Positions 8,290 through 48,067 of a stretch of DNA of 64,000 nucleotides are shown here, in pieces. The translations under genes and the position numbers were made by a program. The stretch is taken from the IMG/VR virus record IMGVR_UViG_3300032562_000004, positions 1 through 64,000 of that record. One strand, written 5' to 3'. The notes below the pieces were generated by a model. That model saw only the letters and a list, made by a program, of their open reading frames with translations. It was not told where the DNA came from and ran no database searches. Position 1 is the stretch's first letter; every line of letters begins with the position of its first letter.

Positions 8290-8333
8290 AGAGTAGGTGG
8301 GATCCCCCGATCCGTGACCTACACCTATTTATA
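8290..8333 (-). promoter_or_regulatory. late promoter TATAAATA plus conserved stem-loop upstream of GIY-YIG gene
   Basis: TATAAATA-GGT-GTAGGT-CAC-GGATC-gggg-GATCC-C-ACCTAC-TC; homologous to 48021-48067. Confidence 0.8.
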
Positions 8334-8395
8334 CCAAACGCTCACTAACAAACACAATCTTACTAATAACCACTCATAGAATGGTTACTATAAAA

Positions 8396-9148
8396 TCACG
8401 CTGCCAATTTTAATTCAATTGTTGGATACTTAACGAAACCACTTGTATCCTTCTTTGCTTTACCTTTAGCATATAATCCAACAATAACACCTTTTGGATC
8501 TAAAAAGCGTAAATCACTTTCATCGCCATTATATACTGGCAAACCAAGGTAAGTATCGGGCATTGGTAATGTTTTCTTAATACCAAATACTACAGCAATA
8601 TTATAACCTTGCTTAATCGCTTCACGCACATCATTATCATTACCATCAGCGGCCGAGAAGGTTAAACTATAATTACTAATATGATTAACTTTACGACCTA
8701 ATACTTTTGAATAATCATAGAAGGTAACAAAACCAAACGCCGCAAAGATATTAGAGTAAGTAACATTACCCATAGTAACTGGATATTTCTCCCATGAAAT
8801 ATCGCTAGTACCATTTAAACGAATAACTGGAACTAAACCTGCTTTGGCAGATTGCTTAATCGCCAAGTTAATATCTTTCACCAATAACTCCATAAACAGG
8901 TCACGATTATCAAAGAATAGATTAGTTTTACGAATCCGTGCTTTTTGAATAGTATTAGTATTCTCGCCTTTTTTAAACATACCGCCACGACCAGCAGTAT
9001 TCAAACACGCAGAAATGCAACCTGGTGTTGCTTTAGGACAGGTATTATGACCTGATAATGATGCTGGTGCTAAATGAAGAATATAGGTATTATAACCTTG
9101 CTTCATTCCCTTTAAAGTCTTGGGATTACCGACTGATAATAAATTCAT
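8396..9148 (-). CDS. GP88-like phage protein (Cys-rich, putative Fe-S)
   Basis: HLAPA...NTCPKATPGCISACLNTAGRG, IRLNGTSD, FYDYSK, GDESDLRFLD. Confidence 0.7.
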   Translation of the reverse strand: MNLLSVGNPKTLKGMKQGYNTYILHLAPASLSGHNTCPKATPGCISACLNTAGRGGMFKKGENTNTIQKARIRKTNLFFDNRDLFMELLVKDINLAIKQSAKAGLVPVIRLNGTSDISWEKYPVTMGNVTYSNIFAAFGFVTFYDYSKVLGRKVNHISNYSLTFSAADGNDNDVREAIKQGYNIAVVFGIKKTLPMPDTYLGLPVYNGDESDLRFLDPKGVIVGLYAKGKAKKDTSGFVKYPTIELKLAA

Positions 9149-9203
9149 AATATAAACTTTCTCAAAAATTACAATCGAGCGCAACTCTCTCACTTAAAAA
9201 ACC

Positions 9204-9297
9204 ATTATACAGGCATTAGAATGAACCACAATCAAATTGGCACATTCCAATACGGTTTCTCTGTCGAAAAACCAGTATGTGTTGTATCGGAACAACG
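9204..9297 (-). promoter_or_regulatory. promoter plus palindrome copy 3
   Basis: TTGTGG-N16-TATAAT; TGTTG-tatcggaa-CAACG at 9280-9297. Confidence 0.55.
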
Positions 9298-9545
9298 ACT
9301 TAATCTTTAATACATTCAACCAAGTAACCATTACCTTCCATTTTGGATAATAATGCTTTAATCGTTTTATCCATCATATTAGATAATGGATAATACTCCG
9401 TTCTAAATCCAACCTTACTGCAAACAAATGTATAACCTTTCATAATACCCTTTCTACTTTAATATTACCAGACATTACCTTAAACTGATTATCAATATCA
9501 CTAAAATGATAAGATAATAGTATAATCAAACAAACGATAATAACT

Positions 9546-9728
9546 TTATCCATTATCTAATGCCATTTCAATATCTAACCAGTTATTAAACTCCTCATTA
9601 TAGGCAATGGGATCCATTTCCTTCAATATATCAGAAGGAGAAAATGATATACCAGCAATAACTACATCACCATGCTGATTATCAAAATAATAGTTAAAAT
9701 CTTCAACCAAACGCTTCATACTGCTCAT
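9546..9728 (-). CDS. hypothetical phage protein
   Basis: PSDILKEMDPIAY motif. Confidence 0.65.
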   Translation of the reverse strand: MSSMKRLVEDFNYYFDNQHGDVVIAGISFSPSDILKEMDPIAYNEEFNNWLDIEMALDNG

Positions 9729-9828
9729 AATACTCCTTTAATCAATTTAGATAATGACCTCTTAACCTTATAAGAGAATCCAATAATGAAATACTTAACT
9801 AACTGAAAATTGCTCATATAATACCTTT

Positions 9829-10269
9829 TTATAATAAACCACTAATAATACTGCCTGCTGAATTATTCATAATGCTACGATATAATTCACCTTTAATTCT
9901 TTTTACCAATTCCGAACGATTATTCCATGACCTCATAAAGGATAATGGTGATGCATCATGATTATTACCATAATAAATCCATTCTCTACCATGATTATAG
10001 TTTACTTTATATTCTTTACCTTTTAAGTTAATTATAGTGGGATTAAATAAACTCTTAATATCTGCCTCCACTTTAGTAACCATTGGAATATATTCAGAAT
10101 GGATTATAGTATAATCTAATGGTGTAGATTGACTTAATCCCGCCATTCTATTATTCGGTGTCTTTTTAGTAATACCGATTTTAATCCAACCTGGCATACT
10201 CTTATTAAAAGCAATATAAAAATAACCATTATTCCTTTTAGATAATAGATTATGCTTTGAATTTCTCAT
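9829..10269 (-). CDS. T5orf172-type GIY-YIG domain protein
   Basis: GYFYIAFNKSMPGWIKIGITKKTPNNRM...E...GREW. Confidence 0.75.
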   Translation of the reverse strand: MRNSKHNLLSKRNNGYFYIAFNKSMPGWIKIGITKKTPNNRMAGLSQSTPLDYTIIHSEYIPMVTKVEADIKSLFNPTIINLKGKEYKVNYNHGREWIYYGNNHDASPLSFMRSWNNRSELVKRIKGELYRSIMNNSAGSIISGLL

Positions 10270-10414
10270 AATCAATGACCACAAGCAGATAGAAAACGGT
10301 TAATATCAAATAACCGATTATCATTTTTAAACTGAACCGCCATATCAGAACATAATTGAAATGGTGCTTTATTCTCAAATAATACTCTTGCCAACATAAT
10401 ATAATGCTTTTTAC

Positions 10415-10717
10415 TCATAATCTCTCCGTATCAAATAATTTACTTTTAATAACTCTATAATACTGACCATTCATCCATACCATTTTCTCATATGATAATG
10501 CACGGATAATAGTCCTTATTGACCTATTGTATATCTGAATAATACGAGAACCAGATATACCATAATCTTTACCTAAATCTTTATTAGTACCATTATCAAG
10601 AATATAGTGCAATACAATACTATAATCTCTCTCAGATAATACTTCCTGAGCTATATCTAATACCTCATGGCATAATACGATATTATCCAAATCGTTATCT
10701 TCCACTATATTGCTCAT
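10415..10717 (-). CDS. sigma70 region-4-like HTH protein
   Basis: LSERDYSIVL...TNKDLGKDYGISGSRIIQIYNRSIRTI resembles region 4.2. Confidence 0.7.
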   Translation of the reverse strand: MSNIVEDNDLDNIVLCHEVLDIAQEVLSERDYSIVLHYILDNGTNKDLGKDYGISGSRIIQIYNRSIRTIIRALSYEKMVWMNGQYYRVIKSKLFDTERL

Positions 10718-10991
10718 AATGATGCTCCGTATATTACTTTAAAATCTATTCTATATTACTTTTGGTTATATGTCGCTATAATGGTCGGGATATAGGTGCT
10801 CTTGAATGGTCTTAATTTCTATTTCTGATTATCCTAGAGAATCCTAGTTAATCCACAAAGATTTTCCGAGCATATTCACAATATCATAATACCATAATAA
10901 CTAATATAATCAATAACTTAATACTAATAACCACTATGCGTATCAGAATACCACAATGGTTATTATATTACTACTGATTATCTCTATACTA

Positions 10992-11219
10992 TTATGAAGC
11001 TAATCTAGCATTCAATTTAGCCAGTTTATCTTGAGCAGCTTTAATCTGCGCTTCGATTTTTGCCTTCTTTTCTGCTTCTTTATTAGCCTTAATGATTAAC
11101 TTGGTGGATTTACTCATTACTACATCCTGCTTAATGGATTCTCTTAACTCTTTTAATAGAGCACGCTTATCCTTAATAGAAACCATGGAGAGGTCGGTAG
11201 CACAAAATGATTTAAACAT
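10992..11219 (-). CDS. hypothetical basic protein
   Basis: 75-aa ORF with a Lys/Ala-rich tail. Confidence 0.7.
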   Translation of the reverse strand: MFKSFCATDLSMVSIKDKRALLKELRESIKQDVVMSKSTKLIIKANKEAEKKAKIEAQIKAAQDKLAKLNARLAS

Positions 11220-11268
11220 ATAATATTCCTTTTAATAATTGGTAAATGTAAATGGTACAGCTTGATAA

Positions 11269-11613
11269 TTAAGCAAATCTGCGATATAATCTAATACCAG
11301 CTTTTGCGCCTCTTACTGCTTTACTGGTTAATCGGTCGCTTTTAGTGGTAATAATACGACCACCATTATTGAGATAATCCAGAATATCGTGCTGGATGGC
11401 AATATCTTGGATAATACGCTTATTGGTTACTGGTTTATCATATTGCTTACCAGTAAAGGCCTTAGCGATATTATTAGCCACGATATACTCATTATCCATA
11501 ATGGCAGCTTTTTTGGCAGCAGCTTTTTCCTTACGCTTAATAGAGGATATATCCTGATTAACTCGGGATAATAACTGCTTTAATTCAATAATCGATAAAT
11601 TTTTAATATCCAT
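11269..11613 (-). CDS. hypothetical basic protein
   Basis: 114-aa ORF, first after the promoter at 11676-11703. Confidence 0.7.
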   Translation of the reverse strand: MDIKNLSIIELKQLLSRVNQDISSIKRKEKAAAKKAAIMDNEYIVANNIAKAFTGKQYDKPVTNKRIIQDIAIQHDILDYLNNGGRIITTKSDRLTSKAVRGAKAGIRLYRRFA

Positions 11614-11675
11614 ATAATCCTAATAATAATATAATCGATAAAAACACCAAAGCGGTGCGCAGAACCGATTTTATA

Positions 11676-11703
11676 AGTATACAGGAACCATGGAAAAGGT
11701 CAA
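11676..11703 (-). promoter_or_regulatory. sigma70-type promoter
   Basis: TTGACC-N16-TATACT. Confidence 0.6.
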
Positions 11704-11760
11704 GCGGTATTTTTGCGGATGGCAGGTAGGATGATGGTTTTTTGGTGCGTTGCCGGATGA

Positions 11761-11870
11761 GTGTTGTTTTGGAGCAACGACTGTGGCAGATTGGAGAGCA
11801 GCTTTGAGGCGCTCAGAGGTAAAAGTGTTGTTTTGGAGCAACGCCGGAGAGCAGTATGGAAAAAAGCTCA
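11761..11870. repeat. imperfect ~64-bp tandem repeat containing palindrome copies 4 and 5
   Basis: GTGTTGTTTTGGAGCAACG at 11761 and 11825, each followed by GGAGAGCAG and GCTCAG. Confidence 0.8.
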
Positions 11871-11918
11871 GGATAGGTCAAATCAATGATTCAGTAACTC
11901 CTTTTCCAGGAAATTTTT

Positions 11919-12122
11919 TCAGGATCCGACTTTTTTGGATTCTAAATTTTTTTCCTGTTCCCGGTTCTTAATCCAGACTAATGCATCATCCAGATTCATC
12001 CACGGAGAATACTCTTTGGTCTTTTCGTCAGTCCATTGGTATTCGTGTGATTCTCCGATCCACCAGTTATTCGCTGAGTGGTCCCATCGAGCAGAAGGGT
12101 TACTTTGTTTCTTTAATATCAC
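11919..12122 (-). CDS. hypothetical Trp-rich protein
   Basis: 67-aa ORF. Confidence 0.55.
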   Translation of the reverse strand: MILKKQSNPSARWDHSANNWWIGESHEYQWTDEKTKEYSPWMNLDDALVWIKNREQEKNLESKKVGS

Positions 12123-12297
12123 AGTTACACTCTAAGCGGCCTTGATTACAGTCACCATTACATCCTTTAGATGGTTTAGGAAACTGGCAAGGAGCATCAT
12201 AGTTACCAGTAAGGCATCGTTGGTCACAGGTAACTCTAATAGAAAACCACTTATCGATTAATCGTACCCACCAGGAATTAGGTCTACAGTTCTTCAT
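12100..12297 (-). CDS. hypothetical Cys-rich protein
   Basis: CNGDCNQGRLECNC motif. Confidence 0.6.
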   Translation of the reverse strand: MKNCRPNSWWVRLIDKWFSIRVTCDQRCLTGNYDAPCQFPKPSKGCNGDCNQGRLECNCDIKETK

Positions 12298-12722
12298 TAT
12301 TTTTTCCAGTTAAATCCTAATAGTTTGTATAATAGCTTACTGTACCATTTCGGTTCGTTCTCTAGTACTACGGAGATTCCACCAATGTTGAGTTGGCCAA
12401 CTGAATTTTGAGGATGAACAGAAAGTGTAGGAGAAATGTTTGTGGACCAGGTACCTAGAACTACTTTAAATTCGTGTATAGAACCTTGAATCGGCATAGA
12501 ATGTACTCCAGCGATTCCTTGAGCTCTATAGTGAAGGTGTGTCGGACCATAATCTAAATCTAATTCGGTTTGCTCAGTTAGTGGCCAGAACCAAACGATA
12601 TCGGCCTGATTGTTCCAATCTTTTCGTATTGCGTCTACCCATTTTTTACCCCAGCGTTCTTCCCAAGTCGGCTCAGAGGGTTTTTCGAATTGTATTCTAT
12701 CTTCTGTGGTGAACGTGGTCAT
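12297..12722 (-). CDS. hypothetical protein
   Basis: MTTFTTEDR start, 141 aa. Confidence 0.7.
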   Translation of the reverse strand: MTTFTTEDRIQFEKPSEPTWEERWGKKWVDAIRKDWNNQADIVWFWPLTEQTELDLDYGPTHLHYRAQGIAGVHSMPIQGSIHEFKVVLGTWSTNISPTLSVHPQNSVGQLNIGGISVVLENEPKWYSKLLYKLLGFNWKK

Positions 12723-12811
12723 TGTAATATTCCTGAAATATATTTCTTAACTATATAAGTATAAACACTAATACCATTAGTGCAACTCTAAAACTTCTCA
12801 AAAGGAAAATC

Positions 12812-12967
12812 ATGAACTTCTTAAAACAAATTTCGGACGCTTTGAAGTCCTTCTTTAATACTTATGGTCCTATGACTTTAGACGAGTATATCTCTCTAAA
12901 GCGTCCTCAGAATAATGCCGACTTGGATCGCATTGTTCGTGAGTTTAACGAACTTCGTTACTGGTAA
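12812..12967 (+). CDS. small plus-strand protein (51 aa)
   Basis: AAGGA RBS; MNFLKQISDALKSFFNTYGPMTLDEYISLKRPQNNADLDRIVREFNELRYW; late-like TATAAGTA at 12754-12761. Confidence 0.7.
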   Translation: MNFLKQISDALKSFFNTYGPMTLDEYISLKRPQNNADLDRIVREFNELRYW

Positions 12968-13023
12968 GCCCCGGAAGCGAAGCCCCGGAAGCGCTTGAAA
13001 AACTTCTTGTTCTTTGAGCGCTT
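12966..13023. terminator. 14-bp tandem repeat and hairpin between convergent genes
   Basis: AAGCCCCGGAAGCG twice, then AAGCGCTTGAAAAAC...GTTCTTTGAGCGCTT stem. Confidence 0.55.
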
Positions 13024-13243
13024 ATAATGATTGTTGTTCGGTTAGGCCACGCCACTCGATAATTTTAAGTTTCGTTCCGCCAATATCATCCTCTGGCCCA
13101 AAATATTCCCGCCATTCGGTGCCGTTCCAATATGCTTTATGTGGAAACGGCCACGACCTTACTTTGACCTCGTAGATACCTTCGTAAACTGGTTTGATTT
13201 CTTTACTGAACCAGTCGGTCGTTTCGTATTGAACTTCTGACAT
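13022..13243 (-). CDS. hypothetical protein
   Basis: MSEVQYETTDWF...PVYEGIYEV...WRGL. Confidence 0.7.
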   Translation of the reverse strand: MSEVQYETTDWFSKEIKPVYEGIYEVKVRSWPFPHKAYWNGTEWREYFGPEDDIGGTKLKIIEWRGLTEQQSL

Positions 13244-13244
13244 A

Positions 13245-13547
13245 TTACTCGCCTTCGAACACCAGAACCAAATCTTCTTCGTCAACAATCCAATATTCAA
13301 TATTCTCATATTTTACTTTCTTTGCTTTTTGCCAGTTAGGTAGAATCACCTGACCAACTTCAACAATCGTAACATCAGGACCAATTGCAACGATTTTACC
13401 ACGGGAAGCTTCTTCTCTATCAGCAGAAGCTAAAACAATACCACCTTTAGATACTGTATCTTTTTTAACTGCTTCAAGGATAATATTTGCTCTGATTGGT
13501 TTGATACCGATACCAGCTGGTGTTGCTTTAGATTTTTTGGTTGCCAT
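13245..13547 (-). CDS. groES: GroES-like co-chaperonin
   Basis: IKPIRANIIL...SKGGIVL...GKIVAIGP...VGQVIL. Confidence 0.85.
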   Translation of the reverse strand: MATKKSKATPAGIGIKPIRANIILEAVKKDTVSKGGIVLASADREEASRGKIVAIGPDVTIVEVGQVILPNWQKAKKVKYENIEYWIVDEEDLVLVFEGE

Positions 13548-13758
13548 AAATTTTCTTTCTACATTCTTCAATTACTTTGGTGGGAACATCGGGGTGCCAA
13601 CCACCGATTAACATATCACAATTATACTTGATAGGCGTTATCTTGGCAACGATTTTATGGTAATCATCATCAGAAACGAAACCATAGACCACAAAGAATG
13701 CCAGTATTGTGGCAAACATTTTGATTGTGGTTATAGTATCATACCTATCTTTAAACAT
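13528..13758 (-). CDS. hypothetical membrane-anchored protein
   Basis: N-terminal TM; YNCDMLIGGWHPDVP. Confidence 0.65.
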   Translation of the reverse strand: MFKDRYDTITTIKMFATILAFFVVYGFVSDDDYHKIVAKITPIKYNCDMLIGGWHPDVPTKVIEECRKKIYGNQKI

Positions 13759-14557
13759 TTATTTTAAGCATTTCTTCATAAGAATAATTTTGTATCATAT
13801 ACTTGGACGGTTTCTCTAGATAACAAGCTTCTAGGTCACCAGGTCGTCTTGGTAGAACATTCACTTTAAATTTCTTATTGTTTACTTTCTTGTAAATCTC
13901 AATAATTTCTTTGACTGTTCTGGTATCACCATAAGCAAGGTTTTCAATATCTCTGGAAGGTTCATCGATTGCTTTAATAATGGCAGAACAAATATCATTC
14001 ACATGGACATATTCACGAACACATGTTCCATCTTTGGTGTTGTAATCATCTCCATACAGATTAAATCCATCTTTACTGGCCTTCACTAGATTCAATAAAA
14101 TGCCTTCTGGATTGGTTGGAGGAAATCCGTCTGTACCAATTACATTATAGAATCGGAAGATAGTATAATCGTAAGCCTTCTCTTTTACAATATCTTCGGC
14201 AACACGTTTAGAGAATCCATAAGGAGAATCTGGATTAGATGCGGCGCCCGTAGAGGCAAAGATGAAATTGTGGTGTCTTACTTTTTCTAAAAGATTGATT
14301 GTACCACCAACATTCGTTTCATAATAATCGGTAGGATTTTTAACAGATTCACCAACACGAACCAAAGCAGCCAAATGAATTACGGTATGAAATTCCATAT
14401 CACAAGTAAACATATTACGGATATCTAAATTTTCCATACCTGTGCCGGCAATATCAAAACCGTACAAATCAATATCAGGTCTAGTTTCAAAAATCATTTG
14501 CCATAGATGGCGACCAATGTAACCTTTATGACCTGTAATCAATACTCTTTTTTTCAT
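13751..14557 (-). CDS. galE: NAD-dependent epimerase (UDP-glucose 4-epimerase-like)
   Basis: TGHKGYIG, HLAA, YGFSK, FRFYNV, GTCVREYVHV, RRPGD. Confidence 0.85.
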   Translation of the reverse strand: MKKRVLITGHKGYIGRHLWQMIFETRPDIDLYGFDIAGTGMENLDIRNMFTCDMEFHTVIHLAALVRVGESVKNPTDYYETNVGGTINLLEKVRHHNFIFASTGAASNPDSPYGFSKRVAEDIVKEKAYDYTIFRFYNVIGTDGFPPTNPEGILLNLVKASKDGFNLYGDDYNTKDGTCVREYVHVNDICSAIIKAIDEPSRDIENLAYGDTRTVKEIIEIYKKVNNKKFKVNVLPRRPGDLEACYLEKPSKYMIQNYSYEEMLKINV

Positions 14558-14724
14558 TTTGTTTTCTTTTTCTTACATTCACACCAAGATTCTTTTTTAC
14601 CACAAACATTGCAGTAACCTTTTAGAATTGGTCTATCACCAAAAATTGTATTCCACTTCTCTGCAAATTCTTCCTTTGGAATCACAAAAGGTCTTGGAGA
14701 ACTTCCTTTTCCACCGTCACTCAT
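14554..14724 (-). CDS. hypothetical protein (56 aa)
   Basis: MSDGGKGSSPRPF...CNVCGKKESWCEC read by hand; ATGA overlap. Confidence 0.65.
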   Translation of the reverse strand: MSDGGKGSSPRPFVIPKEEFAEKWNTIFGDRPILKGYCNVCGKKESWCECKKKKTK

Positions 14725-14835
14725 TATCTTCCTAACTGTTGTTTTAATTGGTCCATGATTTGTTTCACTTCATTTCTCATATAATTATTTTTTGGCAACC
14801 AAACATATATTCGATTTAATAATTGTAGTAATTGC

Positions 14836-15102
14836 TCAGGGTTCATTATTATCTTTTAAGAATTTAATTACTGGTAATTTGTTTGCTACCAACACATAAG
14901 CTTCTTTTAATGTTGGTGTAATAACTTTGCAATGAAATATACCATCTTTAATCATGATATCGAAAGGTGCTAATCCGACAAAGCTTTCATCAACAATACA
15001 ACGAATATGCCAAGATTTGGCAGTCTTGCATCTTTTAATTAAATCATCATAGATTTTTTTAGGATCAAAGGGATCAAATAAAGCAACTTCAGACATTTTC
15101 AT
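14836..15102 (-). CDS. hypothetical protein
   Basis: 88-aa ORF. Confidence 0.65.
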   Translation of the reverse strand: MKMSEVALFDPFDPKKIYDDLIKRCKTAKSWHIRCIVDESFVGLAPFDIMIKDGIFHCKVITPTLKEAYVLVANKLPVIKFLKDNNEP

Positions 15103-15292
15103 TCAATAAACTAGGACCATTATTACTTTCACTCAAGGTAAAACTTTCAGCAAGTTGTTCCGCTTTACTAAAGTCAGATACAACTTCTTTATTAATGATT
15201 CTACCTTTTAGGTAATAATTAACGGTATATGAAAAATCTTTTCTTTCGACAATAGCTTTTTTATCACCATTGGTAAACTTAGACAGTTCCAT
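15089..15292 (-). CDS. hypothetical protein
   Basis: MELSKF start; similar to the upstream neighbour. Confidence 0.65.
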   Translation of the reverse strand: MELSKFTNGDKKAIVERKDFSYTVNYYLKGRIINKEVVSDFSKAEQLAESFTLSESNNGPSLLNENV

Positions 15293-15494
15293 GAATTTCT
15301 CCCCATACAAATTGTTCAGCATAAGATTGTGCTTCGGATTCTTCTTTAAAGAATTTGGTTTCCATTAATACTAGACCATCATCGTCAGCACAATCAACTT
15401 CAAACATATCAAATATATTTCTCCAAATAATAGTGGCAGTTTTTCTACCACTATTACCTACAAAAGTAACGATTCGTTTTTCGCCATCCATCAT
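15279..15494 (-). CDS. hypothetical protein
   Basis: 71-aa ORF; ends AQSYAEQFV like its neighbour. Confidence 0.65.
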   Translation of the reverse strand: MMDGEKRIVTFVGNSGRKTATIIWRNIFDMFEVDCADDDGLVLMETKFFKEESEAQSYAEQFVWGEIHGTV

Positions 15495-17620: not shown

Positions 17621-17642
17621 GAATTCTCCGATTTAAAAGACC

Positions 17643-17705
17643 ATTATACTCTAATTATCGCTTACCGTCAAATGTTTTCTGAAAATGCGTTGTTTTTTAG
17701 CAACA
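17643..17705 (-). promoter_or_regulatory. promoter plus palindrome copy 6
   Basis: TTGACG-N17-TATAAT; CGTTG-ttttttag-CAACA at 17688-17705. Confidence 0.7.
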
Positions 17706-17708
17706 CCA

Positions 17709-18054: not shown

Positions 18055-18061
18055 AATTTCC

Positions 18062-22807: not shown

Positions 22808-22808
22808 T

Positions 22809-40864: not shown

Positions 40865-41423
40865 ATTTTACCCAAAAGATAATACTATCGGTCATATTTG
40901 AAGGTTCTCTGAGGTCAACAACACCACAAACCATATTAGGTGGAACTAAAGTTCTATAATCTTCTGTCCATTCCATTTGACCAATATCTTCAATAATAAA
41001 CATACCACCACGGTTTAACTTTGGTAAATATAAACTAAGTGATTGTAAATGACTTTTTTTGGTGTGAGGACCATCATCAATGATAATATCAAAATTAGGC
41101 AAAGAATCGGCAAACTCTTTTTTATATCCGTCAGCGTAAATTATTTTAACTCGTGGATAAGGTTCACAATTTGTTTTTGCACCAAAATCATATGGGTCTA
41201 CACCATAGAGGTCAGCATTAGGAAAGTAATGATGCCAAAGTGCCATACTTCCGCCACGATGAATTCCTAATTCTAATAAACGAATATTTTTATCTTGATA
41301 TGGCAAAAGAGCTTCATCATAGAAACCACTACAATATTTGTGGTTAAATTCTTTATCTGTACCAAATTCATAATGTGTATCATTACGAATATTATACTTA
41401 ATCATAATATCAACTAAACTCAT
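40857..41423 (-). CDS. class I SAM-dependent methyltransferase
   Basis: LLELGIHRGGS; YGVD; DIIIDDGPH; GGMFIIED. Confidence 0.85.
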   Translation of the reverse strand: MSLVDIMIKYNIRNDTHYEFGTDKEFNHKYCSGFYDEALLPYQDKNIRLLELGIHRGGSMALWHHYFPNADLYGVDPYDFGAKTNCEPYPRVKIIYADGYKKEFADSLPNFDIIIDDGPHTKKSHLQSLSLYLPKLNRGGMFIIEDIGQMEWTEDYRTLVPPNMVCGVVDLREPSNMTDSIIFWVKYA

Positions 41424-42436
41424 TACATTAACCTATCTTTCCATGTTTTAGGTGTTTTATCTGATACAATTTCCAATGGATATGTATAGTCGAAAGGTTT
41501 AGGTCCTTTCTTCTTAACATACGCCACGGTTTCTTGAATGGCTTTTCTTAAATCTGTTTTAGTTTCATAATTTAATAATTTACGAGCTTTATCTGCTGAA
41601 CAAGAAGCGTGTTTAACTTCTCTTGGTCGGTCTGGCATATGAATTGGTGGCCATGTGTTATCTTTTCTCATATCACACTCTTTATTCACCAAAGCAGCCA
41701 ACTCAGCAATAGTAATTGTACCTTCATCAGGTCCAATGTTAATAATCTCACTCTTAATTTTTGGATCTAATGCCATTTTTTCTAAACAATTAATACAGTC
41801 ACTAACATAAGAAAAACAACGAGTTTGTTTACCATCGCCATAAATGATTGCAGGTTTACTTTGCAAATTACGATTAATCATAATACTCATAACATTACGG
41901 AACGGATCATCATAACGCTGACGAGGACCAACAATATTATGTGGCACAGCAATATTCCATTCCATACCATGAGTTTCACAAAGAGCTTTTAATACTTCTT
42001 CACCAGCAACTTTAGCTATGCCATACGGATCTACAGGTCTAGGAGTCATTTTTTCATGGAATGGTGCCTTTTGGTCACCATATCGTGCCATAGATGTGCA
42101 ATAAACAAATCTTTTTACTTTATTTTGGATTGCTGCAGAAATAGTAGATACACTTGCTTCAAAAATATTTCGTGTAATGAAACTAGGAGAGAATACAGAC
42201 AGTCCTTCATGTGCCGTTGCGGCAGTATGAATAACGATATCACAACCTTCCATAGCATAGGTCATCTTTTCATTATCACAACAATCAATGATAAAAAGTT
42301 TTGCTTTTTTTGGAACATTATCACGATAACCACCAATCAAGTTATCATTACCAATAACTTCATGTCCAAGTTCAATCATTCTATCAGCAAGATGGCTACC
42401 TAGAAATCCTGCTAGTCCAGTAATAAAAATTTTCAT
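41423..42436 (-). CDS. NAD-dependent epimerase/dehydratase
   Basis: TGLAGFLG; TSMARYG; YGIAK; HNIVGP. Confidence 0.9.
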   Translation of the reverse strand: MKIFITGLAGFLGSHLADRMIELGHEVIGNDNLIGGYRDNVPKKAKLFIIDCCDNEKMTYAMEGCDIVIHTAATAHEGLSVFSPSFITRNIFEASVSTISAAIQNKVKRFVYCTSMARYGDQKAPFHEKMTPRPVDPYGIAKVAGEEVLKALCETHGMEWNIAVPHNIVGPRQRYDDPFRNVMSIMINRNLQSKPAIIYGDGKQTRCFSYVSDCINCLEKMALDPKIKSEIINIGPDEGTITIAELAALVNKECDMRKDNTWPPIHMPDRPREVKHASCSADKARKLLNYETKTDLRKAIQETVAYVKKKGPKPFDYTYPLEIVSDKTPKTWKDRLM

Positions 42437-42963
42437 TATACTCTCTTAATCAAAGTCATTCCATTGCAATTTGTTCTTCGTTCAACTAATTGCCATTGTG
42501 GATTAGTATCCAAGAATTCTTGAATCGCTTTCCATACACCTCCTTCACCACCTTGGCCACGTGCACCAAATAATTCTGTATCATGGAATAATATATATTT
42601 GCTCACCTTATCAGCATGTAAATCTAATTCACCTTTTACTTGTTCATATGAATGATAACTATCCACAAGCATAATATCTGTTGGTGCAATTTCAGTTTCT
42701 AATGTAGAACAAACATGAAGTGTAACATTTCTACCAGCGGCTCTCGCTTCGTTAAAGAATTGAGTAGTAACCTCATAAGGTGAAATTTCGTAACTATGAA
42801 GTTCTACATCTTGCCTTAAAAATCCTCTGGTACTTTGTGCATATCCAACACCAAGTTCAGTCGCATGTTTACACTCAGAAGTTAGTTCTGAAATCCATGG
42901 TAAATGCTCGTGCATATCGGTTGGTCTGGCACAAGCATCTAAGTATTCTTGTTCAAAGTTCAT
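42436..42963 (-). CDS. SAM-dependent methyltransferase
   Basis: TELGV; DIMLVDSYH; YILFHDT. Confidence 0.75.
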   Translation of the reverse strand: MNFEQEYLDACARPTDMHEHLPWISELTSECKHATELGVGYAQSTRGFLRQDVELHSYEISPYEVTTQFFNEARAAGRNVTLHVCSTLETEIAPTDIMLVDSYHSYEQVKGELDLHADKVSKYILFHDTELFGARGQGGEGGVWKAIQEFLDTNPQWQLVERRTNCNGMTLIKRV

Positions 42964-42964
42964 T

Positions 42965-43801
42965 TTATGTACTGTATATAAATAATTGTGATTCATCTTC
43001 TTGTCCATATTTTTCTTGGACAAACTTCTTTAAAACTGGTACCCTATCGTATTGGTGTACAATTGGAAAAACTTTATCGGTATAATCTTTTAAAATACCA
43101 TCTTCAAAAAATGGTTCAACGATAAGTAGATTTGGCCTAAACTGTTCAATCTTGGATGGATCCATGATTGTTCCTAACTCAGCAGCCCATTGTGTTGTTT
43201 TAGTTACAACATCTTTAAACGGTTGTGTGTTGATTAGAACATTGAATACTGCTTGGTCTACGATAGGAATTGGTCGGTTGATTCCGTTTGTGAAAATATG
43301 AAACACCATATCTTTTACATATTCTGATTTACCACCAAAGGTTCCTACATTAAAGATTTCATTGTTTTTAAATTTATCATACACATATGGACCATAAGCT
43401 TGATATAAATTCTCATTACCCCAAGGTTCGTCTTTATATTTCAAACCTTCAGATGCAATAACCAATTTACGGTCAACTAAGAATTTAAATGGATCTGTTT
43501 GAAAATAAACATCTTTAACATCAGTAGTAACAACATATTGATAATCAAACCAATGATTTTCTAGATATTCATAGATTGATAAAAATCGTAACACATGGAT
43601 CGGTATGTTTTGTACTTGTAACATGGGAACAACAACTACTCCTTGTTCTACCAACCAATCTAGTGTTTCATCTGAAGCGTTACCATAAACCAAAACAACA
43701 TCATTATCACCAGCAACTTCTTTTGCTGAGATAACCCAAGGTTTTAATTGGTTAATGTTATAGTTTGTGAACCCGCCGATGATGAGATTTTTTTGCGCCA
43801 T
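42965..43801 (-). CDS. putative glycosyltransferase
   Basis: VVTTDVKDVYFQTDPF; FNVGT; DQAVFN; IVHQYDR. Confidence 0.7.
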   Translation of the reverse strand: MAQKNLIIGGFTNYNINQLKPWVISAKEVAGDNDVVLVYGNASDETLDWLVEQGVVVVPMLQVQNIPIHVLRFLSIYEYLENHWFDYQYVVTTDVKDVYFQTDPFKFLVDRKLVIASEGLKYKDEPWGNENLYQAYGPYVYDKFKNNEIFNVGTFGGKSEYVKDMVFHIFTNGINRPIPIVDQAVFNVLINTQPFKDVVTKTTQWAAELGTIMDPSKIEQFRPNLLIVEPFFEDGILKDYTDKVFPIVHQYDRVPVLKKFVQEKYGQEDESQLFIYST

Positions 43802-44505
43802 GGGAATTCTCCATTATATTTTTGATTCATTACATTATTTCCATTGATAAAGAAATCGGCAGTAACCGAACCTTTACCGCCATCAACACGATAGTTTACG
43901 GTATACTCACCTGTACAATCGAATTTCTTAAAGTGCTGAGCAACGACACTCAGGAACACTCTATCTTGTCCCCAACCACCATGCCAACAACTTGCTATTT
44001 TAACAGCAATCTCTGTCTTGAGGCAATATGAATTGGTATCCACATGGTTCACTCCATGGTAAGTTTGCCATTTACCTAAAGATTCACAATCATCATGGCA
44101 AACAAATGTACCATCCTTATTGTATACGTCACGCAAAGAATAACACCAATCAAGATTCTTTTCTTTGATTGTGTTGATACAAGTTTCAACGTGATTTGGT
44201 TTTAACCAATTATCTTGGTCGAGATATAATACATATTCTGTATTAATTAAATGAGTGAAAGCGGCATAGACACGGTGTCCGTAGAATCCATTGGCGCCCA
44301 CATTGGTTGGTAAACTACATAGAGTAATGTTCTTGTATTTCGGATGCTTTTCAAATTGTTTAATATGGTTCTTGATAGCGTAAACAAATTCAGGACCATC
44401 ACAAACAATATAACATTTAGTTTCGTATGTTTGGTCTAATACCGATTTAATAGCTTCATGTACTGGTGCAGCGACAGTAGTTGGTATAATCACAGTTGCG
44501 GACAT
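43744..44505 (-). CDS. glycosyltransferase family 2
   Basis: TVIIPT; IVCDG; LYLDQDNW; VDTNSY; DRVF. Confidence 0.85.
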   Translation of the reverse strand: MSATVIIPTTVAAPVHEAIKSVLDQTYETKCYIVCDGPEFVYAIKNHIKQFEKHPKYKNITLCSLPTNVGANGFYGHRVYAAFTHLINTEYVLYLDQDNWLKPNHVETCINTIKEKNLDWCYSLRDVYNKDGTFVCHDDCESLGKWQTYHGVNHVDTNSYCLKTEIAVKIASCWHGGWGQDRVFLSVVAQHFKKFDCTGEYTVNYRVDGGKGSVTADFFINGNNVMNQKYNGEFPWRKKISSSAGSQTITLTN

Positions 44506-44507
44506 AA

Positions 44508-44786
44508 TTAATCTCTAGTCAGTTTTAAAATCTTTTCTATTTGTGCTTCGATGGCAGGTTTACGGTTAGGCCAATATATGTATTCTTTATCTCCAGTTGA
44601 ATGGAGTTTAGTTAAGAATGGAACAATCATCTTTTCTAATTCTTGTAATCGTGTCTTATAATCATCCGCTGTTGCAGCAGTTTTATTAATTACTGAATTA
44701 TATTCTTCTTCAGAAACAGCAGAGAAACCAAAATCATTATCAGTTTCATATTGCTTAGCTAGTTTATCAAAATCAATTAATGCCAT
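44508..44786 (-). CDS. conserved hypothetical protein
   Basis: DFGFSAVSEEE...YIYWPNR motif. Confidence 0.75.
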   Translation of the reverse strand: MALIDFDKLAKQYETDNDFGFSAVSEEEYNSVINKTAATADDYKTRLQELEKMIVPFLTKLHSTGDKEYIYWPNRKPAIEAQIEKILKLTRD

Positions 44787-44794
44787 ATTCTATC

Positions 44795-45499
44795 CTATTT
44801 TGAATTTGCTCTTGATGAAAGAGCTTTTAAATAATCCTTATCATCCAAATCACTATCAGACTTTTTTAACGAATTTGGAATTGCTTGTATAGCGGTTGTA
44901 AATCTATAATTATAAATTGGAATACTTCCACCTCGTTTGATTCGAATTCTCAATTTCAATTTTAAATTGAATTCTGGTAATCCTAATTTTGCAGGATCTT
45001 TACCCATGTAATAAAATCCACTTTTACCAATTTGAATATAATAAGTATCTTTACTATTGTAATACTTAGATACCGCATTACTTGGTATATCTATAAACTC
45101 ATCTTTAAAAGTTTCATAATCATATTCAACATCTTGTTTTTTGTATAGTTTATATGGTACTGTATATTTTCTTGGTGCACCTTTTGGGCCCCATTTCTTA
45201 TTTACTATTTTCACAACACCAATAGATTCTAAAAATTGCCTCATCTGTTCCGCAGCAACTGTTTTTGCTCCACCTAAACTCCATAAACCACTATCAACAT
45301 TATAATCTAAACTGCCTTGGCCAAAATCAACTTTAGTATCTAATTTAATTTCTATCTTATAATCTCGGCCTTGATATCGAATTTTGGCATCAGGTGCATT
45401 AGAATCTGCACCAGCAGCAACAAATCCTGGAGTTAAAAGTTTTGCCTTTTTTAGATTGGCGTTTACTTTAGATTCGTAAACAAAGCCTTTGTTAGACAT
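44795..45499 (-). CDS. PD-(D/E)xK-like nuclease-fold protein
   Basis: APDAKIRYQGRDYKIEIK; late promoter GATAAATA at 45522-45529. Confidence 0.6.
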   Translation of the reverse strand: MSNKGFVYESKVNANLKKAKLLTPGFVAAGADSNAPDAKIRYQGRDYKIEIKLDTKVDFGQGSLDYNVDSGLWSLGGAKTVAAEQMRQFLESIGVVKIVNKKWGPKGAPRKYTVPYKLYKKQDVEYDYETFKDEFIDIPSNAVSKYYNSKDTYYIQIGKSGFYYMGKDPAKLGLPEFNLKLKLRIRIKRGGSIPIYNYRFTTAIQAIPNSLKKSDSDLDDKDYLKALSSRANSK

Positions 45500-45524
45500 A
45501 ATATATCCATTTAAAAGGAACTAT

Positions 45525-46634
45525 TTATCTGATGATTTGAATGTCTTTGCCTGAAGTCCAGATTTCTAATTCATTTCTCAATCGACCATCCAACTTGAGT
45601 GATTCATAACGATTGGTTGCTTTTTGCTTCCACCATGAAATGATGTTACTCAATTCATGTTTCTCATAGTTTTCACCAGGTAAAAGTTCATCAGTCTTAC
45701 AGTTCATGTAATCCACAGCATTCTTAAATCCATAATCTGAAGTATAATATCTTTTCTTTTCGGTCAACTTTTTAGCGTTCTCAATCGTTAAAGAGAATGC
45801 CTCTCCTTCCGCAGTACCTTTTAAAGCAGCTTTAGTAAGAGCAATAATCTTTGTAAAAGTTCTTAGTTTTCTACTGGTGGTCGATGTATCACCTGCCAAT
45901 AAATCTCCAGTAATATTTTCCACATAGTTTTTCAAATCGTGATATCGTTGACCGTGCATCATTGGTACAATATCAGATTCGGTCAGACCACGAAAACGAA
46001 TGTAAGGTTTCATACCATCATATTGTGATACTGTCTTGGTACTACCATACAAACTGGTAGTTTCAAATAGGCATAAATTCATACCATATTTTTTATTACA
46101 GATTTCTCTTACTTCATGACTGGTACAGATGGCAGATAGAAGTTTACCACCTAGATAATTATAACCAAAAGGTTGAGCTGGTACAATTACGAATCCCATT
46201 ACAGTAGAAGCATTGAATCTTTTTGCAGTATCTTCCTGTTGAATCCAGACCTGTCCTAAGAGTTCATTACGAGGTTTCATATAGATGACTGGTGAACCTA
46301 ACCGAATGAAACCTAGAACCTTTCCTGACTTCTTTTCCATAACCGCCAACTGAATATTTTTACCAACTGGTGATTTATTAATATGAGAACTGGTAATGGC
46401 AAGTAATGTTTCCCAAGTGGTACCATCAATCTCACAAACATCAATTTCCATATCATTTGGGTGCATAGAGAAATCAGAGAACAAATCGTCCTCTGGTGGA
46501 AACAATGAAGAAGGTAAATTTTCAAGGTTCTTTAATTTCTCATCACGCATGTATTCTTCGGTACTTCCAATATTACTGAAATAATCATCGAATACTTTAG
46601 AGCAATGTAAGGCTTGTTCTCTAGTTAGAATCAT
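45525..46634 (-). CDS. DUF4338 / DruA-like protein
   Basis: GFIRLGSP..PRN; GFVIVPAQPFGYNYLGGKLL; FETTSLYG..SQYD. Confidence 0.65.
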   Translation of the reverse strand: MILTREQALHCSKVFDDYFSNIGSTEEYMRDEKLKNLENLPSSLFPPEDDLFSDFSMHPNDMEIDVCEIDGTTWETLLAITSSHINKSPVGKNIQLAVMEKKSGKVLGFIRLGSPVIYMKPRNELLGQVWIQQEDTAKRFNASTVMGFVIVPAQPFGYNYLGGKLLSAICTSHEVREICNKKYGMNLCLFETTSLYGSTKTVSQYDGMKPYIRFRGLTESDIVPMMHGQRYHDLKNYVENITGDLLAGDTSTTSRKLRTFTKIIALTKAALKGTAEGEAFSLTIENAKKLTEKKRYYTSDYGFKNAVDYMNCKTDELLPGENYEKHELSNIISWWKQKATNRYESLKLDGRLRNELEIWTSGKDIQIIR

Positions 46635-48010
46635 ACTTTAAAGCCTTCAAATTTCTTATGTTGAATTTTGTTTTGTGAACCAATCGCTGGTTGTCCTGAA
46701 TCAGCCAAGCCGACTTGTGCTGATTGTTCAATATCATATAATCTCATTTTGGATCGGTCAACACCAATTGTAAATCGTTTGTAATATGTTGGGTCATTAT
46801 ATCGATTCTTTAATTGTTTTACCATAATTTGACCAAGTTCTTCTAAATCTTCACTTGTGATTAAAGCAAACATCAAGTCTGCTGTGGCGGGAAGTCCGAA
46901 CGATTCACTCGTATCTTCAAGTCCTGGATCACTCGATGTAAATCCGGATCTTGTAGTCTGTGTCGCAGATACAATAGGAACATTATACTCAACAGCCAGA
47001 CCCCTAAGCTCCTCTGCAATAGACTTAACGTATGTGTAGGAATTAATATTCGCACCAGCCTTAATACGAGAGCTACAACAGATGTTAAGATAATCAACAA
47101 AGATAATATCAGGTACAAAAGACCTTTTGAGATTAAGTTCATTTAATAATGTCCTAAAGTGAGTAGTAGACGCTGAAGCAGTTGGATATTCTTTGATGAT
47201 GAGTTTACCAGTTACTTTTTCTTTAACTTTGGCAACCTTCTTATCATACATATCTTTTGGTAAGTCCATCAAATCATCAAGTGTAACATTCAATAAGTTT
47301 GCATCTATTCTTTCTGCAATTTTTTCTTCAGCCATTTCCATAGTGATGTACAAAGCATTTTTGCCTTGGACCATAGCTGCCGCTGCAACATGGCACATGA
47401 ACAAAGATTTGCCAACACCTGTACCAGCAAGAGCAATATTGAGAGTTTTAGTTGGAAGACCACCTTTTGTAATCTTGTTGAAGTATTCGAGGTCAAAAGG
47501 AATTCGCTCCTCTTTTCTATGATAGAAATCATAGCGAGCATCAGAGTTTTCAAGATAATCATGTCCTACGGTTGTATCGAATGAAACGGCCAAGGCGGCC
47601 GATAATATAGAGGGAATCGCACCTTTGTCGTGACCTTTGTCCTTACCATCGAGAATTGAAATAGCCCGTAATACGCCATTGTAAATCGCTTTCTCCTGGC
47701 AAAACTTTTCGGTCTTATCAACAAGCCATTGAATCTCGGTTTCTGATGTACGATTAGATTTAATTTCTTCGAGATATGATTCGCATCCCTTAACTTCATC
47801 ATCTGTAATAGTGGTCTTTTCTTTGACGGCAATACTAAGTGCTTCAACCGTTGGTGGAGTATTGTAAGTCTCCGTGAATGATGTAATTTCATCGAATAAT
47901 GTCCTCTCCGTTCTGTCGGAGAAATAGTCAGATTTTAAAAATGGTAATACTTTTCTTAAATAGTCCTCGTTATAGACTAGGTTTTTTAATATGGCTTGCT
48001 CTAATTTCAT
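46631..48010 (-). CDS. gp41: replicative helicase (T4 gp41)
   Basis: LAGTGVGKS; ITMEMAE; VDYLNI; SATQTTR; SESFGLPATAD; KNRY. Confidence 0.96.
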   Translation of the reverse strand: MKLEQAILKNLVYNEDYLRKVLPFLKSDYFSDRTERTLFDEITSFTETYNTPPTVEALSIAVKEKTTITDDEVKGCESYLEEIKSNRTSETEIQWLVDKTEKFCQEKAIYNGVLRAISILDGKDKGHDKGAIPSILSAALAVSFDTTVGHDYLENSDARYDFYHRKEERIPFDLEYFNKITKGGLPTKTLNIALAGTGVGKSLFMCHVAAAAMVQGKNALYITMEMAEEKIAERIDANLLNVTLDDLMDLPKDMYDKKVAKVKEKVTGKLIIKEYPTASASTTHFRTLLNELNLKRSFVPDIIFVDYLNICCSSRIKAGANINSYTYVKSIAEELRGLAVEYNVPIVSATQTTRSGFTSSDPGLEDTSESFGLPATADLMFALITSEDLEELGQIMVKQLKNRYNDPTYYKRFTIGVDRSKMRLYDIEQSAQVGLADSGQPAIGSQNKIQHKKFEGFKV

Positions 48011-48020
48011 ATCTTTCCAT

Positions 48021-48067
48021 TATAAATAAAGGTGTAGGTCACGGTACTGGAATACCCACCTACTCTA
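48021..48067 (+). promoter_or_regulatory. late promoter plus conserved stem-loop upstream of GIY-YIG gene
   Basis: TATAAATA-AAGGT-GTAGGT-CAC-GGTA-ctggaa-TACC-C-ACCTAC-TCT. Confidence 0.8.

Follow-up and report, generated by a model that had tools for sequence, protein, structure and literature searches.

Why should two GIY-YIG-type nuclease genes lying 40 kb apart in the same phage genome be preceded by almost the same short hairpin next to a late-promoter motif? To answer this, both sites in the window (the 64,000-nt stretch analyzed here, part of a 236-kb phage genome) were re-read, folded, and compared with other viral sequences. The features of the two sites are collected in Table 1. Both sites read exactly as the initial annotation described them, and its observation is therefore confirmed, although it was understated. 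The pattern gives two matches in the window and none in 100 dinucleotide shuffles, and both hairpins fold as originally drawn. The two ORFs, which start MSIYSIYK and MSSIYSIYK, are 49% identical to each other over 89 amino acids. The flanks of the hairpin are 100% identical although the proteins are only ~49% identical, indicating that the resemblance is neither chance nor simple paralogy.

Table 1. Coordinates of the features at the two sites, in window positions.
Position	Strand	Feature	Basis
8241..8338	.	Module copy 1, whole (sense promoter to codon ~9 of the nuclease)	Covariance model hit, 85.4 bits, E 2.9e-18
8326..8333	-	TATAAATA, T4-type late-promoter motif facing the nuclease gene; on the + strand, the U-rich tail after stem-loop 2	Sequence; NATAAATA also precedes head and tail-sheath genes in this genome
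8290..8325	-	Hairpin as initially annotated, GGTGTAGGTCACGG-ATCGGGGGATC-CCACCTACTCT	Pattern match; fold at -16.8 kcal/mol
8293..8322	+	Stem-loop 2 of the predicted antisense RNA (the same hairpin on the opposite strand): 6-bp outer stem, one R:Y pair between two single-base bulges, 5-bp inner stem, 4-nt loop	Folding, covariation, strand assignment
8270..8291	+	Stem-loop 1 of the predicted antisense RNA: CUGGCAUC / GAUGUUAG, 8 bp with two G·U pairs; loop CUUCCU complementary to the nuclease's Shine-Dalgarno sequence	Alignment with RNAalifold, pair counts; coordinates derived from the sequence
8257..8263	+	ATATATA inside nuclease codons 2-4, a one-mismatch variant of the antisense ATAAATA promoter core; overlaps a weak sigma-70-like -10 (TATACT, 8260-8265)	Variant class; TTGTGA-16-TATACT, 9/12, a weak match
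7903..8268	-	121-aa GIY-YIG-only ORF, co-oriented with its neighbours	Pfam GIY-YIG (PF01541), E 1.7e-9
48018..48130	.	Module copy 2, whole	Covariance model hit, 68.3 bits, E 8e-14
48021..48028	+	TATAAATA, late-promoter motif facing the nuclease gene	Sequence
48031..48066	+	Hairpin as initially annotated, GGTGTAGGTCACGG-TACTGGAATAC-CCACCTACTCT	Pattern match; fold at -12.3 kcal/mol
48034..48063	-	Stem-loop 2 (the same hairpin on the opposite strand)	Folding, RNAalifold, pair counts
48065..48096	-	Stem-loop 1, subfamily form: CUGUGUC / GACAUAG, 7 bp, with an enlarged 18-nt loop	Alignment with RNAalifold; coordinates derived from the sequence
48077..48106	-	Sigma-70-type promoter on the antisense strand (TTGACA-18-TAAACT with TG); the -35 overlaps the nuclease start codon (ATGTCAA); points through stem-loop 2 toward the helicase gene	10/12 match; conserved as TTGACA-17/18-TAnnnT in all 5 subfamily members examined
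48100..48747	+	215-aa GIY-YIG-type ORF, antisense to the surrounding operon; last 68 nt overlap a convergent 70-aa ORF	Pfam GIY-YIG weak and sub-threshold, E 0.007; 49% identity to the ORF of copy 1
46631..48010	-	DnaB-like (gp41-type) helicase gene; start codon 23 nt beyond stem-loop 2 in the antisense direction	Pfam DnaB_C, E 9e-19

A module shared by unrelated nuclease genes

A covariance model search of the genome found 7 strong copies of a ~100-bp module, the two in the window and five more at 136.5, 152.0, 177.4, 202.8, and 208.8 kb. Each of two independent patterns hit at least 120 viral contigs, other viral genomes hold up to 13 copies, and more than 200 distinct copies were retrieved from viral metagenome contigs. 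Nearly all of these precede free-standing homing-type nucleases, which belong to the unrelated GIY-YIG, HNH, HNH_3, and endonuclease-VII-like families. Seven cultured T4-like phages lack the module. In cultured relatives uvsX and the helicase gene are adjacent, or separated by one small ORF, with no nuclease between them, whereas copy 2 and its nuclease gene lie next to the helicase gene. A search of Rfam 15 on both strands returned only 5 tRNAs in the whole window at the gathering threshold, and at E ≤ 1 the two loci gave only a chance snoRNA hit at E 0.61. Both a match to a described Rfam family and the absence of further covarying homologs had been named beforehand as grounds for rejecting the initial annotation, and neither was found.

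The interpretation given in the initial annotation is only partly supported by these and the following results. It proposed a conserved structured RNA or DNA element fused to a late promoter and travelling with this nuclease family, such as an autoregulatory operator, a cis-acting ncRNA, or a mobility end. A conserved and genuinely covarying element that travels with nuclease genes, sits next to a T4-type late promoter, and is absent from Rfam is supported. The restriction to one nuclease family is not, as the same module precedes four unrelated families, which argues against an autoregulatory operator recognized by the nuclease itself. Of the options offered, the cis-acting ncRNA is closest, but on the other strand, whereas a mobility end is neither supported nor excluded.

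Covariation and the strand of the fold

Both hairpins covary strongly. On the sense-strand model 15 of 15 pairs show double changes, with a covariation score of 0.52–0.53 compared with 0.16 for shuffled alignments and 0.11 or less when the model was slid. When hairpin 1 was left free, 47 of 106 copies were found to have other outer stems, and these are nearly all compensatory. The non-Watson-Crick cells on the sense strand, however, comprise 176 A·C, 8 G·U, and 20 others, the reverse of the pattern expected for a sense fold, and the R:Y pair occurs as G-C, A-U, or A·C, with no G·U counted at it. The antisense fold is more stable in 178 of 196 copies (-17.2 versus -13.0 kcal/mol, p 1.5e-31), and RNAalifold on the same 44 sequences gives -21.3 kcal/mol (19 bp) for the antisense strand and -12.3 kcal/mol (15 bp) for the sense strand. 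The antisense model pairs in 98.6% of 2070 cells, and the conserved TCTAA and CAGC pair only on this strand, where a G·U is kept in 107 of 109 copies. As the sequences are related, these cell counts overstate the number of independent events. Taken together, the results place the selected fold on the strand opposite to the nuclease gene.

A fold in the nuclease mRNA leader, as the initial annotation had it, is therefore unlikely, although some observations fit it. In this view hairpin 1 would sit at the very 5' end of the late transcript and stabilize it, or serve as a protein operator, whereas hairpin 2 would present or occlude the Shine-Dalgarno (SD) sequence. The sense TAAATA lies 5 nt before the stem in about 70% of copies, such that a late transcript would start at the first stem base, and 5'-terminal hairpins protect mRNA from RNase E. 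Hairpin 1 still pairs in 95–97% of cells on the sense strand, and in cis-antisense pairs both RNAs usually fold. The SD lies in the loop and 3' arm of hairpin 2, with a predicted unpaired probability of 0.58–0.59 in both transcript types, and the extended stem has A·C mismatches on the sense strand. Against this view, predicted accessibility of the SD and AUG is the same with or without upstream sequence.

The strand asymmetry alone does not prove an RNA, because G·T wobbles are also tolerated in hairpins of single-stranded DNA. The hairpins could thus form in one DNA strand during replication or recombination and mark a boundary of the mobile cassette, as a recombination or co-conversion end or as a target for a structure-specific enzyme. 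The module is always at the 5' edge of the cassette, the copy at 202.8 kb is a module fused to a 16-aa C-terminal stump, which shows deletions ending inside it, and the PeSL motifs of T4-like phages are proposed recombination points. This reading is nevertheless improbable, as the flanking motifs are transcription signals with transcription-like spacing, the loop of stem-loop 1 is complementary to the SD, and no matching element was seen at the 3' end of the cassettes.

Promoter-like motifs at both ends and a predicted antisense RNA

The sense TAAATA lies within 8 nt of hairpin 1 in 104 of 109 copies, so a T4-type late-promoter motif is found immediately upstream of the nuclease ORF. The M-x-I-Y start shared by the nucleases, which the initial annotation had listed for the two ORFs, is a nucleotide signal and not a protein feature. 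TATTTA, the reverse complement of the promoter core TAAATA, is present in 95 of 109 copies and is kept in three reading frames. Codon 2 encodes 12 amino acids but ends in T in 132 of 132 ORFs (p 3e-64), and Ile is ATT in 125 of 132, against 41% elsewhere in the same ORFs. An antisense TAAATA is present in 93 of 109 copies, and it lies 6 nt before the first paired base in 67 of these 93. The sense and antisense TAAATA sites share A at -1 (75 and 79%), a 5-nt spacer ending in T (89 and 88%), and then G (77 and 85%). These data support, at the motif level only, a promoter on the opposite strand that is convergent with that of the nuclease. About 15% of all copies, including both copies in the window, lack an exact antisense TAAATA. 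Copy 1 has ATATATA, whereas in copy 2, which has a sigma-70-type promoter instead, the spacing to stem-loop 1 is also wrong for a late promoter.

The complementarity of TAAATA and TATTTA also suggests the classical T4 scheme, in which the transcribed promoter (UAAAUA) of read-through transcripts pairs with UAUUUA at codons 2–4 and closes a three-way junction that hides the start region, whereas late transcripts lack the 5' arm and are translated. I-TevI, segB, and Aeh1 mobE are controlled in this way, and Dassa et al. (PMC2677866) read their metagenomic hairpins likewise. In our sequences the mean pairing probability of this helix is 0.24, with no change in SD/AUG accessibility, the four variable positions flanking the hexamers pair no more often than shuffled controls, and C-TAAATA is never matched by TATTTA-G. 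As a 6-bp all-A/U helix closing a multiloop is also weak, this scheme is very unlikely here.

The most likely explanation, to which we assign a probability of roughly 0.55, is that the module sits at the 5' end of free-standing homing-type nuclease genes in a large group of uncultured T4-like phages and directs a ~70-nt cis-antisense RNA. Two inward-facing late-promoter cores (NATAAATA), one facing the nuclease gene and one on the opposite strand inside nuclease codons 2–4, would bracket ~58 bp that fold on the antisense strand into two adjacent stem-loops followed by a U-rich tail. The RNA would start at the G just before stem-loop 1, end in the U-tract after stem-loop 2, and be fully complementary to the 5' UTR of the nuclease mRNA, including its SD. 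Pairing of the two RNAs, together with convergent transcription, would hold down expression of the nuclease. The analysis demonstrates the family, the covariation, the strand of the fold, nucleotide-level selection on TATTTA, the promoter-like geometry at both ends, and independence from the orientation of host genes; that the antisense promoter fires, that the RNA exists and ends at the U-tract, and that it represses the nuclease are inferred from sequence alone. The tail contains 5–7 U in 9 nt in 184 of 196 copies, but as it is the reverse complement of the sense promoter it is not independent evidence for a terminator, and stem-loop 2, which has bulges and an A/U-rich base, was not called by a simple terminator scan. 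Both promoters would be late promoters, and it is not obvious why a gene and its repressor would fire at the same time.

Flanking genes run opposite to the nuclease in about two-thirds of 201 cassettes, and 4 of 7 cassettes in this genome lie on the minority strand, so host transcripts would carry the antisense strand anyway. The hairpins may instead act within these transcripts, as a terminator or insulator ahead of the next host promoter or as a 5'-UTR hairpin of the next host gene, without a dedicated antisense RNA. In the host direction stem-loop 2 and the U-tract are often followed by TTGACA-17-TATAAT, SD, and ATG of the neighbour, as in the PeSL layout, and the conserved sigma-70-type promoter of the copy 2 subfamily would fire through stem-loop 2 toward the neighbour. 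However, cassettes co-oriented with both neighbours (n = 32) keep the antisense features at least as well as opposed ones (88 versus 79% with TAAATA; -4.8 versus -4.2 kcal/mol), indicating that the fold does not depend on host read-through. Such an element does not explain stem-loop 1, its anti-SD loop, the frame-independent TATTTA, or its fixed 5–6-nt distance to stem-loop 1. The distance to the neighbour's ATG varies from 20 to 190 nt, a sigma-70 promoter is often absent, and in copy 2 an efficient terminator 23 nt before the helicase ATG would cut off an essential gene. This alternative remains possible but is considerably less likely than the antisense RNA.

If the antisense reading is correct, the module could represent a new, abundant family of phage antisense small RNAs whose promoter is dual-coded inside codons 2–4 of the gene it controls and which is shared as a portable module by unrelated selfish nuclease genes. 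Because up to 13 cassettes per genome carry near-identical stem and SD segments, the RNAs could act in trans as a copy-number-sensing brake on the whole nuclease population of a phage genome (multicopy inhibition), or between co-infecting phages. This extension is tentative.

Comparison with known systems

The predicted arrangement resembles control of the IS10/Tn10 transposase by RNA-OUT and RNA-IN, and that of phage P22 ant by sar RNA. In these systems a mobile element's own nuclease-type gene has a convergent promoter inside or next to its 5' end, which makes a short, stable stem-loop RNA complementary to the 5' end and ribosome-binding site of the mRNA, and several copies share the regulator. 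The module differs in having T4-type late promoters (or a sigma-70-type promoter in a subfamily), in a predicted RNA that would cover the entire 5' UTR with two stem-loops, in an antisense promoter motif dual-coded with codons 2–4, and in its cargo, a homing nuclease in a lytic phage. A precedent in a T4-like phage is the antisense RNA CfrI of cyanophage S-PM2 (Millard et al. 2010, as described in PMC2984593), which overlaps a free-standing homing endonuclease gene and is co-expressed with it. CfrI is ~225 nt, links the nuclease gene to psbA, and has no known function, and no shared two-hairpin module is described for it. The cultured cyanophages S-SRM01, B23, ACG-2014f, and MA01 do not match our model.

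[quoted passage not shown] In those systems the promoter sits within the hairpin, such that late transcripts escape it, and the hairpin hides the SD on the sense strand, whereas here both arms of both hairpins lie downstream of the promoter and the selected fold is antisense. Dassa et al. (2009, PMC2677866) described 5'-UTR hairpins with two complementary conserved motifs and TATAAATA upstream of metagenomic free-standing endonucleases in "fractured genes", including GIY-YIG and other nucleases in T4-like DNA and gp41 loci, with the hairpin retained after loss of the nuclease. Judged from this verbal description, theirs is possibly the same element; it was interpreted as a sense-strand translational hairpin from about 16 loci, with no covariation or strand analysis. 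The PeSL composite terminator-promoter motifs of T4-like phages (PMC4122927) also consist of a stem-loop followed by an AT-rich stretch and, in many loci, a sigma-70 promoter, SD, and ATG of the next gene, are repeated many times per genome, and are associated with variable genes. PeSLs are built on early promoters, are simple stem-loops, and are not tied to nucleases, whereas the conserved unit described here includes late-promoter cores and a second hairpin, and the sigma-70 promoter is not part of it.

Distribution of the module and its downstream genes

To determine whether the two sites described in the initial annotation are real, both were read again and compared. The observation holds, as both sites share GGTGTAGGTCACGG...CCACCTACTCT, each directly after TATAAATA, with inner stems that differ but still pair. 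The pattern matches twice in the window and never in 100 shuffles. The two ORFs are GIY-YIG-type and only 49% identical to each other, while the hairpin flanks are identical. The window is part of a 235,812-bp IMG/VR virus record with 36% G+C, a distant T4-like phage whose UvsX is about 60% identical to that of Stenotrophomonas phages. A covariance model finds 7 strong copies of the module in this genome, at 8.3 (copy 1), 48.0 (copy 2), 136.5, 152.0, 177.4, 202.8 and 208.8 kb, plus a weak relic at 173.4 kb. The downstream ORFs, which like all gene calls in the loci are crude ORF calls, include a clear HNH_3 protein (E 3e-14), and one module is fused to a 16-aa C-terminal stump that resembles the WHFDNC motif of the 215-aa nuclease, indicating a nuclease cassette gutted by an internal deletion. 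Two other GIY-YIG paralogs (tblastn E 1e-11 to 1e-25) lack the module, so the module is not obligatory for these genes. The coordinates of these and neighboring features are collected in the table.

Coordinates of the module copies and of other features of the window and of the complete virus genome; L-numbers are our designations for individual loci
Feature	Position	Strand	Remarks
Copy 1, shared hairpin	window 8290-8325	-	
Copy 1, antisense core	window 8257-8263	+	ATATATA
Gene upstream of copy 1	window 8396-9193	-	Pfam GP88-family protein (E 2.7e-37)
100-aa ORF	window 10415-10717	-	contains LGKDYGISGSRIIQIYNRSIRTI; judged by eye to resemble a sigma-70 region-4 / helix-turn-helix domain
Copy 2, shared hairpin	window 48031-48066	+	
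215-aa nuclease ORF	window 48100-48747	+	3' end overlaps the 70-aa ORF convergently by 68 nt; its C-terminal ~23 aa may be read-through into the neighbor
70-aa ORF	window 48680-48892	-	CxxC...CxxC spacing; no Pfam hit
Cluster of five tRNA genes	window 62035-63225	-	called by Rfam (50-69 bits)
GIY-YIG paralog without module	genome ~77066	-	
GIY-YIG paralog without module	genome ~117843	-	
Weak model hit	genome 173372-173468 (locus L130:1500-1600)	+	E 0.01; looks like a decayed module (GATATAAAC...GTAGCG...CCACTCT...TATATTTAG) with no obvious nuclease ORF after it
Module-linked ORF without Pfam or PHROG hit	genome 177410-178150 (locus L125:1575-2312)	+	
Complete stem-loop 2 and promoter fused directly to a 16-aa ORF	genome 202770-202889 (locus L129)	-	16-aa ORF MNRWHFENCTSVNTYM; an identical copy occurs in another viral contig (L022)

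Outside this genome, two independent pattern scans of viral contigs each returned at least 120 hits, and five large viral genomes hold 13, 13, 8, 1 and 1 copies. The 174 distinct downstream ORFs have a median length of 203 aa and include GIY-YIG, HNH, HNH_3, NUMOD3-bearing and endonuclease-VII-like proteins. They also include an abundant class with no Pfam or PHROG hit, represented by the ORF at 177.4 kb and by 37 ORFs in other loci (e.g. L012:12880-13560:+), with an N-terminus like M-T-I-Y-Y-L-Y-x-K-T-H-N-x-T-G-L-K-Y-L-G, which is possibly a very diverged GIY-YIG-like nuclease family. An autoregulatory operator was considered and set aside because four unrelated nuclease families share the module, and tRNA-like or ribozyme readings were dropped since the element is just two plain hairpins. 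Rfam gave no match on either strand, at gathering or at E<=1, and blastn of both loci and of a 110-nt consensus-like leader against GenBank phages found no match. The covariance model gave no credible hit in seven cultured T4-like phages (C48C1, DLP6, Moby, S-SRM01, B23, ACG-2014f and MA01). A scan of bacterial genomes returned at least 120 hits; of 120 hits, only 2 (L243 and L317) carry the full signature and most of the rest are expected to be chance matches. L243 is a 2.2-kb contig binned to an uncultured Bacteroidetes MAG and may be mis-binned phage DNA, making it at most a weak hint of the host. A search of the literature with a literal sequence string returned only unrelated primers.

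Covariation and the strand of the predicted fold

In the first set of copies the one free outer-stem position is T-A in 77 copies, G-C in 34 and mismatched in none, and the inner stem pairs in 111 of 111 copies, using 38 different arm pairs. When hairpin 1, the hairpin of the initial annotation, was left free by anchoring the search only on the downstream part, 47 of 106 copies had other outer stems, nearly all compensatory. On model-based alignments all 15 sense-model pairs show double-sided changes, with a covariation score of 0.52-0.53 compared with 0.16 in shuffles and 0.11 or less in slid controls, although the sequences are related and cell counts therefore overstate the number of independent events. 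A second hairpin around the Shine-Dalgarno (SD) sequence covaries as well.

The mispairs indicate which strand folds. On the sense strand of the nuclease the non-Watson-Crick cells are A·C/C·A in 176 cases, G·U/U·G in 8 and other in 20, and an A·C mismatch on one strand is a G·U wobble on the other. The R:Y pair inside hairpin 1 occurs as G-C, A-U or A·C, with no G·U counted at it, which is the signature of pairing on the opposite strand. From the stem base to CAGC, the antisense fold is more stable in 178 of 196 copies (-17.2 vs -13.0 kcal/mol, p 1.5e-31), and RNAalifold on the same 44 sequences gives -12.3 kcal/mol (15 bp) for the sense strand and -21.3 kcal/mol (19 bp) for the antisense strand. 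An antisense model aligns 112 hits with 98.6% of 2070 cells paired. On this strand the previously unexplained conserved strings pair with each other, as GCUG (reverse complement of CAGC) pairs with UUAG (reverse complement of the CTAA in TCTAA), which extends stem-loop 1 to 8 bp and includes a G·U kept in 107 of 109 copies. The interpretation in the initial annotation is thus only partly supported: a conserved, covarying element does accompany the nuclease genes, but a sense-strand leader, as proposed there, appears unlikely. A single-stranded-DNA or recombination element is regarded as less likely still.

Promoter-like motifs and genomic context

Read 5' to 3' on the antisense strand, the module consists of ATAAATA; a 5-nt spacer that contains the complement of the start codon; G; stem-loop 1 (8 bp, with a loop complementary to the SD); a single A; stem-loop 2, which corresponds to hairpin 1; and then AC-UUUUAUUUAU, the complement of the sense promoter and its A-rich spacer. 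The tail and the sense promoter are the same bases and do not constitute independent evidence. A simple terminator scan called nothing at either window copy, but it probably cannot handle bulged stems and is uninformative here. The antisense ATAAATA is the complement of TATTTAT in codons 2-4 of the nuclease. TATTTA is present in 95 of 109 copies, at offsets +3, +4 and +5 from the ATG, so it occurs in all three frames. Among 132 M-x-I-Y ORFs, codon 2 encodes 12 different amino acids yet ends in T in 132 of 132 (p 3e-64), and Ile is ATT in 125 of 132, compared with 41% elsewhere in the same ORFs (p 2e-39). Homologous nucleases without the module, in phage S-SRM01, do not start M-x-I-Y.

The sense and antisense TAAATA sites share the same flanks and the same 5-nt spacing to a G, and the antisense site lies 6 nt before the first paired base in 67 of 93 copies. 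At T4-type late promoters transcription starts about 6 nt after TATAAATA. NATAAATA precedes the head and tail-sheath genes of this genome. A closing helix between the promoter and TATTTA was rejected, as the predicted pairing probability between the two hexamers is low and the variable positions flanking them do not covary. The hexamers therefore behave as two separate promoter-like elements and not as a helix, and the classical promoter-in-hairpin scheme is considered the least likely of the alternatives.

By crude ORF calls the genome has an extreme strand bias, unlike T4, with 308 genes on the - strand and 28 on the + strand, yet 4 of 7 cassettes are on the + strand, so that nuclease cassettes are over-represented on the minority strand. 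Across 201 cassettes the neighbors run opposite to the nuclease in about two thirds of cases, and in that direction stem-loop 2 and its tail are often followed by a sigma-70 promoter and the start of the neighbor. A terminator or 5'-UTR element acting in the host direction is therefore possible, and is the strongest of the alternatives, but remains doubtful. Cassettes co-oriented with both neighbors keep the antisense TAAATA (88% vs 79%) and the antisense energy advantage (-4.8 vs -4.2 kcal/mol) at least as well as opposed ones, indicating that the fold is not merely a feature of host transcripts.

The two copies in the window are atypical, as both carry TATATAT in place of TATTTAT. In copy 1 the antisense core overlaps a weak sigma-70-like TATACT. 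Copy 2 belongs to a subfamily with an enlarged stem-loop 1 loop and a conserved antisense sigma-70-type promoter, in which TTGACA overlapping ATGTCAA is followed by a 17-18 nt spacer and TAnnnT in 5 of 5 members. In copy 2 this promoter points through stem-loop 2 toward the DnaB-like helicase gene, whose ATG lies 23 nt beyond the hairpin. In cultured relatives uvsX and the helicase gene have no nuclease between them, so the cassette may also supply a promoter for the gene it displaced, as described for T4 nucleases.

Proposed antisense RNA and relation to known systems

The best-supported reading is a cis-antisense RNA of about 70 nt, which would be made from a late promoter embedded in the first codons of the nuclease, would be complementary to the whole 5' UTR of the late nuclease mRNA and would end in the U-rich tail. 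Repression would come from occlusion of the ribosome-binding site, from duplex cleavage, or from convergent transcription. The structure, its strand, the motifs and their geometry are shown by the present analysis, whereas transcription, termination and repression are inferred from sequence alone.

Homing endonucleases are the main selfish elements of large phages, and how they are kept harmless is known only for a few T-even cases, all through sense-strand hairpins. A conserved, portable antisense-RNA module shared by unrelated nuclease families would be a second, widespread solution. It would also be a new phage small-RNA family of several hundred members, and would explain why unrelated nucleases begin with the same M-x-I-Y peptide. 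The module is also a practical marker for finding free-standing nuclease cassettes, and novel nuclease families, in viral metagenomes. The case is a reminder that the asymmetry of G·U versus A·C should be checked before a covarying hairpin is assigned to an mRNA leader.

Going by their verbal description, Dassa et al. 2009 probably saw this or a sister element in about 16 metagenomic loci, and read it as a sense-strand translational hairpin. The module differs from the T-even RBS-sequestering hairpins and from PeSLs. The nearest phage precedent is CfrI of S-PM2, an antisense RNA overlapping a homing endonuclease gene. In its proposed mode of action, the module would work most like IS10 RNA-OUT/RNA-IN or P22 sar.
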